Virus record (IMG/VR): IMGVR_UViG_3300031344_000002 | Coordinates: 124,001-188,000 of that record | Direction: 5' to 3' (one strand) | Length of the DNA stretch: 64,000 bases | In this document: in pieces, positions 2,706 through 8,344 of the stretch | How the letters are laid out: each line of letters opens with the position of its first letter | Numbering within the stretch: position 1 is the stretch's first letter | Notes under the pieces: model-generated | What the model was told of the DNA's origin: nothing | Database searches by the model: none | The model's input: only the letters and a program-made list of their open reading frames with translations | Position numbers and translations under genes: made by a program

Positions 2706-3797
2706 ATGTTGAAATTAACAACCGAAGATTTTATTAAAAAATCGAGGAATATTCATGGTTATAAATATGATTATTCATTAGTTAATTATATTAATAATCA
2801 TATAAAAGTCAAAATAATTTGCCCAAAACACGGAATTTTTGAACAGACAACATATACACATTATAATGGATGTGGTTGTCCTAAATGTGCTGGTCAATTT
2901 ATGAATACTAAATATTTTATTCAAAAAGCAAAAGAAAAACATAATAATAAATATGATTATTCATTAGTTAATTATATTAATAATTATATAAAAGTCAAAA
3001 TAATTTGCTCAAAACATGGTGAATTTTTACAAAGACCTAATGACCATTTATCTGATAAAGGATGTCCAAAATGTAATGGTGGTGTGAAATTAAATTGTGA
3101 GGAATTTATTGAAAAAGCAAAAATAAAACATAGCGATAAATATGATTATTCATTGGTTGATTATATTAACTCAATAACAAATGTTAAAATAATTTGTTCT
3201 ATTCATGGAATATTCAAACAAAAACCAGCCAATCATTTAAGAGGATGTATTTGTCAAAAATGTGCAGCAATAAAAAAAGCAAATAATCGTAAAAAAAGTT
3301 GTGAAGAATTTATTGAACAATCAAATAGAATTCACAATAATAAATATAATTATTCATTGGTTGAATACAAACATGATAAAATAAAAGTTAATATCATTTG
3401 TTCTAAACACGGTGAATTTTTACAAAAACCTAATCATCATTTAAACGGTAATGGATGTCCCAAATGTAATGATTCTAAAGGTGAAAAAAATATTAAAAAA
3501 TTCTTAATGGAAAAAGATATTAAACATGAATGTCAAAAAACGTTTAATAATTGTATAAATGAAAGAAAATTATTTTTTGATTTTTATTTACCCGAACAAA
3601 ATATATGTATTGAATATGATGGTGAACAACATTTTAAAATTGTTAAATATTTTGGAGGAGAAGTTGGATTTAATATACGACAAAAGAGAGACCAAATAAA
3701 AACTAATTATTGTATAGAAAACAACATAAATCTTATAAGAATAAGATATGATGAAAACATTGAAGATAAATTAACACCAATATTAATAAAAAAATAA
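2706..3797 (+). CDS. putative homing endonuclease: four Zn-ribbon repeats plus C-terminal Vsr/DUF559-like PD-(D/E)xK domain
   Basis: 4x KYDYSLVxY...KVKIICxxHG..F.Q...H..G.GCPKC repeats; FDFYLP..NICIEYDGEQHF nuclease motif. Confidence 0.8.
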   Translation: MLKLTTEDFIKKSRNIHGYKYDYSLVNYINNHIKVKIICPKHGIFEQTTYTHYNGCGCPKCAGQFMNTKYFIQKAKEKHNNKYDYSLVNYINNYIKVKIICSKHGEFLQRPNDHLSDKGCPKCNGGVKLNCEEFIEKAKIKHSDKYDYSLVDYINSITNVKIICSIHGIFKQKPANHLRGCICQKCAAIKKANNRKKSCEEFIEQSNRIHNNKYNYSLVEYKHDKIKVNIICSKHGEFLQKPNHHLNGNGCPKCNDSKGEKNIKKFLMEKDIKHECQKTFNNCINERKLFFDFYLPEQNICIEYDGEQHFKIVKYFGGEVGFNIRQKRDQIKTNYCIENNINLIRIRYDENIEDKLTPILIKK

Positions 3798-3826: not shown

Positions 3827-4195
3827 ATGGATATAACTACAATTACAAAAGAACAATTCGATACAGTATATAACAAATATTTACCAAATAAATGGATTAA
3901 ATTTGCCTATAAATATTTTTCAAGTGAAACTGAAAGAAAAAATATTGCATTAAAAAATACAATAATATATGTTTTATCCGGATTATTTGGTATTGGATTT
4001 ATATCGACAATTATTGGTTTATCCAAATCATTAATTATTACAATTACAATGATATATAGTATTTTACTTGCAATACTTGTGCTTTATTTATTTATTGCTG
4101 TTTTTCTTAATAATCTTAGGACAAATAAAATCTGTAAAGAACTTGGTGTAACTAAAGAAGAATATGATGATTTAGTTACAAAATTTTATAGCTAA
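3827..4195 (+). CDS. hypothetical membrane protein (2 TM)
   Basis: two hydrophobic segments; lies just upstream of the lysin. Confidence 0.6.
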   Translation: MDITTITKEQFDTVYNKYLPNKWIKFAYKYFSSETERKNIALKNTIIYVLSGLFGIGFISTIIGLSKSLIITITMIYSILLAILVLYLFIAVFLNNLRTNKICKELGVTKEEYDDLVTKFYS

Positions 4196-5725: not shown

Positions 5726-5923
5726 ATGAACATATTTATTGAAACATATCGATTTTTATTTATATCTTCCATCATTTTTATGATATATATCTTTGGTGAT
5801 TTAATTATAAAAATGATTGGGAGGTTTTATCTAAATAAAGAAACACAATTTGTTTTAACAACACCTGAAAAAATCATATTATGGATTTCTTTGGGAATAT
5901 TTTTTACATATTTAATCAAATGA
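5726..5923 (+). CDS. small membrane protein
   Basis: two hydrophobic segments. Confidence 0.55.
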   Translation: MNIFIETYRFLFISSIIFMIYIFGDLIIKMIGRFYLNKETQFVLTTPEKIILWISLGIFFTYLIK

Positions 5924-6447
5924 AAACAATTAATTTAGCATTACAACCAGTAGAAGGACACTTAATTTCAATGACTCGAAATACTGTTAATGGATGGTAT
6001 GAAATAGAAGTTGGATTACCAAGTAGTTGGGTTTTTGATGAAAACAATGAAATTAAATGTGAAGTTTTGGCTGAAGATAAGACAGGTAAATTAATAAAAT
6101 TATCGCCAAAAAATCAGAATATTATAATTGATGATTTAATTACTTTTGTTGAAATTATTATTAATACCAATAAGAAAATTGCTGAGAAGGAAGAAGAATT
6201 TAAATTGCAAATGGAAGAAATGAAAAAAGGTCTTGAAAAAAAAGCAAGTGCATTCTTTAAAGAATTGGATGAATTGAAAGAAAATTCATTTAAAAAAATT
6301 AATGATAATTTTGTTAAAAACATACATAAATCTGATGAAGATGAAAAGAAAATAAAGAAAAATAAACAACCTAAAATAATATTACCTTCCGGAGAAACAA
6401 GTACAACCAAAACAACAACAGAATTATTAGAAATAGGTGAGGAGTAA
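5920..6447 (+). CDS. hypothetical coiled-coil protein
   Basis: ATGA overlap with the previous gene supports a start at 5920. Confidence 0.6.
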   Translation: MKTINLALQPVEGHLISMTRNTVNGWYEIEVGLPSSWVFDENNEIKCEVLAEDKTGKLIKLSPKNQNIIIDDLITFVEIIINTNKKIAEKEEEFKLQMEEMKKGLEKKASAFFKELDELKENSFKKINDNFVKNIHKSDEDEKKIKKNKQPKIILPSGETSTTKTTTELLEIGEE

Positions 6448-6495
6448 ACCTTTTTTGTTTTAAAATTTTAAATCAATAAATTATGAAAGGCGGAT

Positions 6496-6846
6496 ATGAT
6501 TTTTATGAAATCAAAAGAAGAAATTGAAAATATGAAAACTTTAATGAAAAAATATGTAGATGCTGGTGTTTTTCAAAACAAAATTATTGTATCATCATCA
6601 CCATCAGTTTGTAATTGGTCATTATCAAGGAAATGCTTGGTTGGCGAAAATGGTATTGAACCATTAGAATTATTAGATAATGGTGATGGAAACAAACGAT
6701 TATCATTTGAAAACAATAGAATGGTTTCGATGCAAAATAGAACTGAAATAAATGTTGATGAAATTAATAATTCAAATGGTATAATTATTTCAGATGCAAC
6801 TTATGGAAAACCATATTTTAGATTTGGATTTATACCAACAGAATAA
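6496..6846 (+). CDS. hypothetical protein preceding the first attC-like site
   Basis: ORF track. Confidence 0.55.
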   Translation: MIFMKSKEEIENMKTLMKKYVDAGVFQNKIIVSSSPSVCNWSLSRKCLVGENGIEPLELLDNGDGNKRLSFENNRMVSMQNRTEINVDEINNSNGIIISDATYGKPYFRFGFIPTE

Positions 6847-7026
6847 TGTTAAATCGAAGCACTATGGTAGCATTGTGTATAATGGTTCGCAGCTCATATA
6901 AAGGCAGGGTTTAAAAGGCACTTACCTGTCCAGTTACAAAAATTAACCAAGTGCCTGAAATGTTGGCAAACAACAACACCCCTGCTTTTATATGAGCTGT
7001 TGTTATAGCCAGTTAATTTTAATAAA

Positions 7027-7215
7027 ATGGAAAAACACAACAAAAATGATGAAACACGGCAACTTGGATACTATTGGGTTGAATGGGAAGATAAAGGCAA
7101 TTGGTTAATATTTTGGTTTAATCAAGGATATTGGCAATGTGTTGCAATGGGGGAAATAGAATTGAATGATGACTATATTTTATCAGTTGATGAAACCAAA
7201 TTGATTCACCATTAA
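7027..7215 (+). CDS. cassette-borne Trp-rich hypothetical protein
   Basis: single ORF filling cassette A. Confidence 0.55.
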   Translation: MEKHNKNDETRQLGYYWVEWEDKGNWLIFWFNQGYWQCVAMGEIELNDDYILSVDETKLIHH

Positions 7216-7344
7216 TTGGCTATAATGAAAAGCATATGGTTAGTAAGCCATACGCAAAATTATCAAATTAATATTAACCAACAACATTTATTTGAAAGTA
7301 ATGAAATAATTGCTTATATTTGTTGTTATAAAATCGTAAAAATT

Positions 7345-7530
7345 ATGGAACAGAAAAAGTTAGTAGAACAGTTGATTAAGGCAGCAAATGAAATTTATAA
7401 AAATAGAAAACCAAGTGCTAATTATATTCAACTAAGTGAAGAATTCATATAACAACAGGCAGATGAACGAGAAATTTCATTTGATGACATGGTAGAAATT
7501 ATCAAAAAAGAACTGATGTCTAATGAATAA
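7345..7530 (+). pseudogene. cassette-borne small gene with an internal TAA at 7450-7452
   Basis: MEQKKL...EEFI*QQADERE...MSNE*; the frame continues to the cassette end. Confidence 0.5.
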
Positions 7531-7633
7531 TTTTTATGTTTTATAACGGTGGCAAATATATTGTCGTTTTAATGCAATATATTTGTTGTTATAAGTATGT
7601 ATTATTTTTGTTTTACCTTATAAAAACTAAATT

Positions 7634-7879
7634 ATGAAAAGAACATTTTTAAAAGTTACAAAGAAGAAATTAAAAGAAATGACTTGCACTTTTTATGGTG
7701 CTGGAAAACAACTACAAAATAATGATAAGGTTTGTAGTGGATTTACAATAAACTATGCAAATTTGAATGGAACACCATCATCAGAATATAATCCAAATGA
7801 AATAACCTTATCATTAAAAATGTTCGTTGAAAAAGATGGTGTATTGTATGAATTATATAAAAATTCAAAACAAAAATAA
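7634..7879 (+). CDS. cassette-borne hypothetical protein
   Basis: single ORF filling cassette C. Confidence 0.55.
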   Translation: MKRTFLKVTKKKLKEMTCTFYGAGKQLQNNDKVCSGFTINYANLNGTPSSEYNPNEITLSLKMFVEKDGVLYELYKNSKQK

Positions 7880-7996
7880 TATTACTTATAACTATTATAT
7901 ATAAAGTTATATACTTAACTATTTGATTGTGAACAATAAATATGATAATATTTTAAAGATTTGTTTTAAATGATTAAAAAACATAAAAACTAATAT

Positions 7997-8344
7997 ATGA
8001 ATAAAGATATATTATCGATTGATTATGATGATGATAATAAAGATATTACCGCTTTTAATAAATATCTTGAAACTGACCTAATTCGAAAGAAAAATCAAAC
8101 TGCTTTTGAAATTGAAAAAATGGGTAATCTTTATCTAAAAGAAATTGATAAAAAAAGAAAACAAAAGGAACATAAAAAAACAAAACTAATTCCATATATC
8201 ATAAAACATTCAAAAGGTATGTATGATATAGAGGAATTAAATTCATATAGTTTTGAAGATATTCGAGACATTCATAATAAAATAAAAAAAGAAAGTCTTT
8301 CATCAATTTCAAAATTTTTTCATTTTATTTTTAATGTTAATTAA
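7997..8344 (+). CDS. hypothetical protein
   Basis: ORF track. Confidence 0.55.
   Translation: MNKDILSIDYDDDNKDITAFNKYLETDLIRKKNQTAFEIEKMGNLYLKEIDKKRKQKEHKKTKLIPYIIKHSKGMYDIEELNSYSFEDIRDIHNKIKKESLSSISKFFHFIFNVN

Follow-up and report, generated by a model that had tools for sequence, protein, structure and literature searches.

Three small genes in a soil jumbo phage appear to be mobile cassettes of a widespread phage system, apparently undescribed, which resembles a bacterial integron in having folded AAC...GTT boundary sites and an associated tyrosine recombinase of its own, of which only a 14-codon stump survives here. We read the region as a decayed, recombinase-less copy of an integron-like cassette platform, although the action of the recombinase on these sites is inferred. 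The window (the whole 64,000-nucleotide stretch that was analysed) is part of a 218 kb, 26% GC virus contig from rhizosphere or peat metagenomes that is estimated to be 66% complete, and it carries phage genes including an endolysin, DNA ligase, Dda helicase and HNH endonuclease. The features of the region are as follows, where handles beginning with G or L are our designations for related virus genomes and loci.

6448-7996, + strand: inserted block with one upstream small gene, three cassettes, a junction box and a recombinase stump
6496-6846, + strand: 116-aa ORF at the distal end of the block, with an N-terminus homologous to a cassette ORF of the G002 array
6850-6883, + strand: right-arm-like remnant ending TATAAT (6878-6883), with AAT in place of AAC
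6884-7001, + strand: site 1, a structured spacer of "family A", with P1 arms 6890-6909 and 6980-6999, inner stem 6916-6923/6949-6956, loop motif ACCTGTC at 6924-6930 and a conserved wobble G6903.T6986
7002-7226, + strand: cassette 1, with left arm 7002-7017, ORF 7027-7215 (62 aa) and right arm 7211-7226 ending TATAAT
7227-7324, + strand: site 2 spacer, with a hairpin at 7232-7255, then promoter-like TTTG (7291-7294), 20 nt and TATATTTG (7315-7322)
7325-7547, + strand: cassette 2, with left arm 7325-7346, ORF 7345-7452 with a premature TAA at 7450-7452 (frame open to 7530) and right arm 7527-7547
7548-7587, + strand: site 3 spacer, with stem 7551-7563/7575-7587 containing two G.T pairs, and TATATTTG at 7578-7585
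7588-7892, + strand: cassette 3, with left arm 7588-7614, ORF 7634-7879 (81 aa) and right arm 7867-7892
7893-7928, + strand: junction box TATTATATATA (7893-7903) and leader of the recombinase gene
7929-7973, + strand: remnant of the tyrosine recombinase gene, GTG plus 13 codons, then TGA

The initial annotation, made from sequence alone, described three imperfect palindromes separating single small ORFs, with each cassette starting at GTTATA and ending in the reverse complement of its own start, and these observations are confirmed: every feature it listed is present. The arms of site 1 are 20 nt long and 95% complementary, and the site folds at -50.8 kcal/mol (z -5.95). The TTATAAC-GGT-stem...stem-GTTATAA hairpin of site 3 lies at 7541-7594. 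The decamer TGTTGTTATA occurs exactly three times in the window (6998, 7321 and 7584), and these are the only intergenic copies in the 218 kb genome, which rules out the idea that it is a genome-wide promoter. AAT replaces AAC at 6881-6883 and 7224-7226, and the nonsense codon that had been noted in one cassette gene is the TAA at 7450-7452. One claim, that no integrase is in the window, holds only for intact genes, because of the recombinase remnant at 7929-7973.

To test the own-end complementarity, we aligned the reverse complement of the 32 nt starting at each GTTATA against the next 60-450 nt. The scores for cassettes 1 to 3 were 12.5, 16 and 21, against a genome null with a 99th percentile of 13 and a 99.9th percentile of 15, so p is about 0.02, 0.0007 and <0.0003, respectively. 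All three alignments are in register with GTTATA, and each right arm overlaps the TAA of its ORF. A genome-wide test of complementarity between the 5' UTR and 3' end over 326 ORFs showed no excess outside this cluster, so this is not a general property of the mRNAs of this phage.

The block is an insertion. In the relatives G003/G002 (loci L250/L251) and L254, which keep the same gene order and whose flanking proteins are 50-88% identical to those of the window, the homologues of the genes at 5881-6447 and 7997-8344 are adjacent, and they are 4 nt apart in L250, so that 6448-7996 is an extra 1.55 kb. The empty site in the relatives shows no AAC/GTT target, and there is no target-site duplication at the block ends. 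At the distal end of the block, 6498-6568 matches the G002 array (L257:10861-10928) at 73% by blastn, and the right-arm-like remnant that follows, also found in a search for the right-arm pattern, is conserved with L001 upstream of the AAC of that locus. Neither the 116-aa ORF nor any cassette protein has a Pfam or PHROG hit.

The cassettes belong to a large family, and the same grammar recurs in hundreds of uncultivated phage contigs. Scanning IMG/VR for the left arm of cassette 1 gave 100 loci, and in 48 cases the matching right arm lies 160-900 nt downstream, around completely unrelated ORFs, in contigs ranging from 4 to 429 kb and from 25 to 47% GC. An unanchored count of pair types was swamped by AT-rich noise, and a pattern search with trailing N in five genomes was uninformative, but anchored alignment of 26 distinct arm types gave a common grammar in which the left arm is GTTATRNNNNG... 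and the right arm is ...TNNNNYATAAC. Positions 6-10 and 12 onward vary but stay complementary, while position 11 is always a G opposite a T. Cassettes 2 and 3 of the window fit this grammar with one extra bulged T.

The arms contain the stop codon and sometimes the start codon, and ORFs are fused to arm-encoded tails such as ...NWL, ...E and ...SKQK before the stop. Cassette 1 encodes the N-terminal domain of a 129-aa protein found in L236, cut and fused to the right arm. Homologues of the cassette 3 protein in L234 and L235 sit in ordinary operons without arms, while the same arms surround an unrelated ORF in L122. The identical frame of cassette 2 surrounds three other, unrelated ORFs in other phages that all end ...GAA TAA inside the same right arm, and the TAA at 7450 is therefore a premature stop, with the frame staying open to the TAA at 7528-7530. 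ORFs or gene fragments are therefore captured into long-lived arm frames.

The spacers are structured. Site 1 belongs to a family of about 130 nt with a 20-bp outer stem and invariant loop bases. In an alignment of 20 family members, 16 of 18 P1 pairs show compensatory double changes, and a G.U pair is kept in 17 of 20; in the window this pair is G6903.T6986, the single imperfection of the palindrome. A 71% homologue of site 1 is found in the huge phage LR745206. Other spacer families (B/D and C) show similar compensatory changes by eye, and a family B spacer has no match in GenBank phages. Searches of Rfam 15 at the gathering score returned no hit in the window and only tRNAs in 11 related loci, and ARAGORN found no tRNA in the window. 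Across 56 spacers, isolated stem mismatches are G(5').T(3') 66 times, against 2 T.G and 5 A.C or C.A. As RNA, all three spacers of the window fold better on the + strand (site 3 at -19.4 kcal/mol, against -12.7 on the - strand), whereas with DNA parameters the two strands are nearly equal at sites 1 and 2 (site 3 at -11.0 against -8.7). We infer that selection acts on a single-stranded form of the sense strand, which may be either RNA or sense-strand DNA.

Sites 2 and 3 also contain TATATTTG, within the 3' arm of the stem in site 3, and site 2 has TTTG 20 nt upstream, which is the Bacteroides -33/-7 promoter consensus and places +1 at the G of GTTAT. The site 2 boxes can also be read as TTGAAA-17-TATATT, at 10 of 12 positions. 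These are consensus matches only, so the promoters are putative. Site 2 is 93% identical to LR756500, and the 20-mer GCTTATATTTGTTGTTATAA was found exactly in 13 viral contigs, most of which share the upstream promoter region by eye. The promoter-like spacer is better conserved across contigs than the ORFs are.

No tyrosine or serine recombinase is encoded in the 218 kb record, and there is no PF00589 hit. However, 7889-7978 is 83% identical to the leader and gene start of a 269-aa tyrosine recombinase of G002/G003, and by tblastn residues 1-14 of the G002 protein align at 7929-7970 with 79% identity. No other part of the gene is in the window. The intact protein is about 270 aa, belongs to the Xer/IntI superfamily and is Xer-like: its best matches are the XerA model and, among structures, XerA and IntI4, and the catalytic R-K-H-R-H-Y residues are invariant. 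It scores 151-153 bits on the integron-integrase model TIGR02249 against a cut-off of 265, with the match split where the IntI-specific insertion should be, and 98-104 on NF011946 against a cut-off of 435.

The position of the recombinase gene is strongly one-sided. In G001, G002/G003, G007 and G032 it follows a cassette array on the same strand, and G005 keeps another remnant after a cassette. IMG/VR holds 372 relatives, and of the best 80, 64 have at least 700 nt of upstream sequence. In these 64 loci there are 111 strict same-strand cassettes upstream and none downstream, and 51 of the 64 have at least one. In 55 of the 64 the last right arm abuts a conserved box, TAAC|TATnATATATA (consensus from 50 distinct recombinase loci), which the window has at 7893-7903. 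On the other hand, 35 of 41 cassette-bearing records, including 12 of the 15 that are at least 90% complete, lack the recombinase. Homologues in cultured phages occur mainly in Flavobacteriia phages (28 of 33 records), and cultured relatives at 38% identity are annotated as lysogeny integrases (PMC8776804).

Absence of shuffling at the junctions had been proposed as grounds for rejecting the cassette reading, and shuffling was found. L307 and L323 share a 97% identical recombinase and backbone but carry 100% identical array blocks in different order, and both breakpoints fall right after ATAAC. One cassette is next to the box in L307 but is internal and followed by a hairpin spacer in L323. 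Where the same cassette interior occurs in different contexts, the downstream flank is conserved in 0 of 8 informative pairs, while the upstream spacer is at least 80% identical in 4 of 8 and 72-79% identical in the rest. L002 against L150 shows a sharp block of 94% identity from GTTAT to ATAA with unrelated spacers on both sides, so spacers and cassette bodies also assort separately, which a single crossover point does not explain. In the source environment, contigs of a strain variant start matching at 7889, the end of cassette 3, but no joints were seen among the assembled contigs, nor any recombination product, circle or junction read, and a metagenome scan with the flank downstream of cassette 3 returned only the contig of the window itself.

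Based on these results, the initial interpretation of the region as an integron-like cassette array is partly supported. Its core idea, cassettes bounded by AAC...GTT palindromes with ends complementary in the excised circle and signs of decay, survives much better than we expected, and we favour an integron-like, recombinase-driven mechanism with moderate confidence. An intact platform, read on the sense strand, would consist of an array of small-gene cassettes, the conserved box and the recombinase gene, where each cassette is a structured spacer, a left arm, an ORF and a right arm. In this view, the sense strand folds so that ATAAC pairs with GTTAT at the base of the spacer hairpin, the recombinase cuts at or next to AAC in the 5' arm, and the cassette leaves as a circle in which its own two arms lengthen the stem, which would explain both the own-end complementarity and the linkage to the upstream spacer. 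The circle would re-enter at the box or at another AAC site, and the invariant G opposite T at position 11 would mark strand and polarity. Because the ORFs are sense on the folding strand, each cassette appears to bring its own host-type promoter in its spacer. The insertion, the box and stump, the one-sided association, the covariation of arms and P1, and the reordering at ATAAC are what the analysis itself shows, while the folding of the strand, the cutting and rejoining of these sites by the recombinase and the formation of circles are inferred. In the window, we propose that the block was inserted between two conserved genes, after which the recombinase gene was deleted down to 14 codons, cassette 2 acquired a stop codon and two AAC ends became AAT. 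An 11-nt repeat, TTTGTTTTAAA, lies at 6454-6464 and 7960-7970, and there is no hairpin after cassette 3.

The main alternative, which we at first favoured but now consider unlikely though not negligible, is a set of mobile regulatory cassettes like the PeSLs (promoter-early stem-loops) of T4-type phages, in which the spacers are composite stem-loop and promoter elements, the arms pair in the mRNA as a 5'-3' panhandle that protects both ends, shuffling happens by homologous recombination between conserved spacers, and the neighbouring recombinase does something else, such as lysogeny, element integration or dimer resolution. This has real support in the promoter-like boxes and their conservation, in the G.U polarity on the sense strand in arms and stems, which fits an RNA structure of the sense transcript at least as well, in the better folding of the + strand as RNA and in the many arrays without the recombinase. 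PeSL stems also overlap the -10 box and contain G-T pairs, and they give mini-circles (PMC2839356). However, it does not explain the strict one-sided link between recombinase and arrays or the box that starts exactly after AAC, and the one-sided link together with the stump led us to demote it. In some family A spacers the start codon lies inside the loop, so the transcript cannot start at GTTAT there. In addition, a fixed G.U at position 11 has no evident RNA rationale, the arms cover start and stop codons and would hinder translation if they paired, and arm complementarity is absent from the other genes of the phage.

We consider a fragment of a classical integron (a CALIN, with true attC sites served in trans by a bacterial IntI) very unlikely, although AAC...GTT palindromes do lie between single ORFs and CALINs recognised by IntI1 have been reported in virulent phages, including a Polaribacter phage (PMC9892861). 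The cores TTATAAC and GTTATA[AG] differ from RYYYAAC and GTTRRRY at two positions each, the bottom strand shows an asymmetric 2 x 5 nt internal loop rather than single extrahelical bases, with no single bulged G or T, the sense strand is favoured, the ORF is inherited with its upstream rather than its downstream site, and the recombinase is not IntI and is downstream and co-directional rather than divergent with an attI and a common promoter Pc. The motif is nearly absent from 185,579 bacterial and archaeal species genomes, with hits on 4 MAG contigs, two of them from Bacteroidota, and neither P12002L, the CALIN-bearing Polaribacter phage of that report, nor the Polaribacter phage Freya_10 contains strict cassettes. 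Small MITE-like transposable elements are similarly improbable: each unit does have 15-27 nt terminal inverted repeats with conserved tips, but the interiors are unrelated while the tips are shared, which is the opposite of a MITE family, target-site duplications are lacking at the block ends, the units are always in tandem, co-oriented arrays, and the linked enzyme is a tyrosine recombinase. Ordinary terminators, REP-like palindromes or chance repeats might be expected in such AT-rich DNA, where 169 inverted pairs were found in 2 kb, but this reading is refuted by the in-register scores, the covariation across dozens of contigs and the one-sided association with the recombinase, and the motifs are not spread through the genome. 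The + strand hairpins are not followed by a T-run, and the only terminator-like hit is on the - strand (7255-7232).

Among known systems, integrons and CALINs share with these arrays the tandem single-ORF cassettes separated by imperfect palindromes (with an AAC/GTT closing stem, a short unpaired spacer, an inner stem and a variable top), the complementarity of each cassette's end to its own start, an adjacent gene for a Xer/IntI-superfamily recombinase, reordering with breakpoints at the AAC junction and many arrays without a recombinase. On the folding strand, the order array, box, recombinase matches the order array, attI, intI on the recombinogenic bottom strand of integrons. They differ in that the recombinase here has no IntI insertion, the core is GTTAT[AG]/[CT]ATAAC, the own-end complementarity is 15-27 nt rather than 7, a fixed G.T at position 11 takes the place of extrahelical bases, the sense strand folds better, the ORFs are co-directional with the recombinase and appear to carry their own promoter in the upstream site, and the arrays are found in phages and almost never in bacterial genomes. 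PeSLs (Arbiol 2010, Comeau 2014; PMC2839356, PMC4122927) are likewise arrays of small orphan genes in a plastic region of a large phage, with a conserved stem-loop plus host-type promoter between genes, G-T pairs in the stems and modular shuffling between related phages, but they have no per-gene terminal inverted repeats, conserved AAC/GTT tips or linked recombinase and are exchanged by homologous recombination, whereas here the spacers include multi-stem families of about 130 nt and the boundaries are nucleotide-sharp. In Xer-exploiting elements that recombine as folded single strands, such as the CTX phage attP with XerCD, a Xer-type recombinase acts on a hairpin formed by one DNA strand, as it would here, but here the enzyme is encoded by the element rather than the host, serves arrays of cassettes rather than one integration event and shows no resemblance to a dif site. 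Morons of temperate phages are also self-contained extra genes with their own promoter inserted between conserved genes, but have no common boundary sequence, arm pairing or dedicated recombinase. We found no description of this motif system in the searchable literature, where the nearest reports are those of PeSLs and of true attC clusters in phages (PMC9892861).

A more far-reaching possibility, which we hold only tentatively and consider slightly less likely than not, is that Bacteroidota phages, from 30 kb siphoviruses to 350 kb jumbo phages, share a second, independently evolved integron, in which a short Xer-like recombinase captures and reshuffles promoter-bearing small-gene cassettes through single-stranded hairpin sites on the sense strand, with a G.T wobble one helical turn from the cut as the polarity mark. 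The cassette pool would then be a communal store of early or counter-defence genes exchanged during co-infection. Integrons are the textbook example of a gene-capture machine and are regarded as bacterial, with only fragments reported in phages, whereas the evidence here points to a parallel system native to phages, with its own recombinase clade, its own site grammar and cassettes that appear to express themselves. If confirmed, this would explain how the large pools of tiny orphan genes in phage genomes are exchanged so precisely, would offer a new recombinase and site pair for engineering, would add several new families of structured nucleic-acid elements, and would provide a simple sequence signature (the arm grammar and the box) for mining cassette cargo, likely early or anti-defence genes, from metagenomes.

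Elsewhere in the window, the HNH endonuclease gene at 2706-3797 also looked as if it were flanked by a repeat, but this repeat is low-complexity AT and not of the GTTAT type.

In the 122 kb contig G001 (L122:1800-8000 and L256, G001:103407-107919), we found at least 13 strict cassettes in two arrays, one of which ends 37 nt before the recombinase ATG, while the second lies 8 kb further downstream on the same strand. Loss of the recombinase gene appears in a second independent case of platform decay, in the 429 kb phage related to LR756500 (L261, G005:311200-312600), which also keeps only a degenerate fragment of the recombinase (residues 33-109) after cassettes. In the window, the 11-nt direct repeat TTTGTTTTAAA occurs at the left edge of the inserted block (6454-6464) and at the point where homology to the recombinase gene stops (7960-7970); it may mark the deletion that removed the gene.

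In some family A spacers (L185:7022-7154, L196:8669-8801, and L195:431-564), we noted that the ATG of the ORF lies inside the spacer loop, and translation reads through the 3' arm and the GTTAT arm, giving N/Q/E-rich N-termini. Site 1 of the window, a family A spacer, keeps a short relic of this arrangement, an 11-codon ORF from 6960. In other loci (e.g. L185:3100-3192, L148:8095-8185, and L183), there are at least two further spacer families: B/D, with a possible pseudoknot (GAAACG/CGTTTC nested with GTTGCC/GGCAAC), and C. Compensatory changes are visible between B and D, and neither family is in Rfam. In the window, the hairpin after cassette 1 (7232-7255) looks like an intrinsic terminator only on the - strand, where a T-run follows it, while on the + strand it is followed by an A-run.

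A DNA run and a metatranscriptome run from related samples (runs X5 and X17) hold contigs that match the window from 7889 onward. Upstream of that point the sequence is unrelated and ends ...GCATTGTTGC before TAAC, so this is a strain with different cassette content. In the RNA library, the listed contig pieces with 0-1 differences include 7889-8087 and pieces outside 6503-7888, and depth inside 6503-7888 is near zero. The ten isolates of one Polaribacter phage species, Freya_1 to Freya_10 (MT732463-MT732472; L343, L344), differ mainly by 0.08-4.2 kb of small genes placed directly upstream of a 38%-identical integrase. They have large structured intergenic regions but not the GTTAT/ATAAC grammar; this may be a sister system.

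The full-length relative of the cassette 1 protein (129 aa; L236:1486-1875) lies in a higher-GC contig and has a GGAGG ribosome-binding site, indicating that the domain has crossed between phages of hosts with different translation signals. Elsewhere in the window, an HNH homing endonuclease gene (2706-3797; PHROG 559, E 2e-91) lies between conserved genes, and in L250, a locus from a related phage, the homologue sits after, not before, the gene matching 3827-4195.
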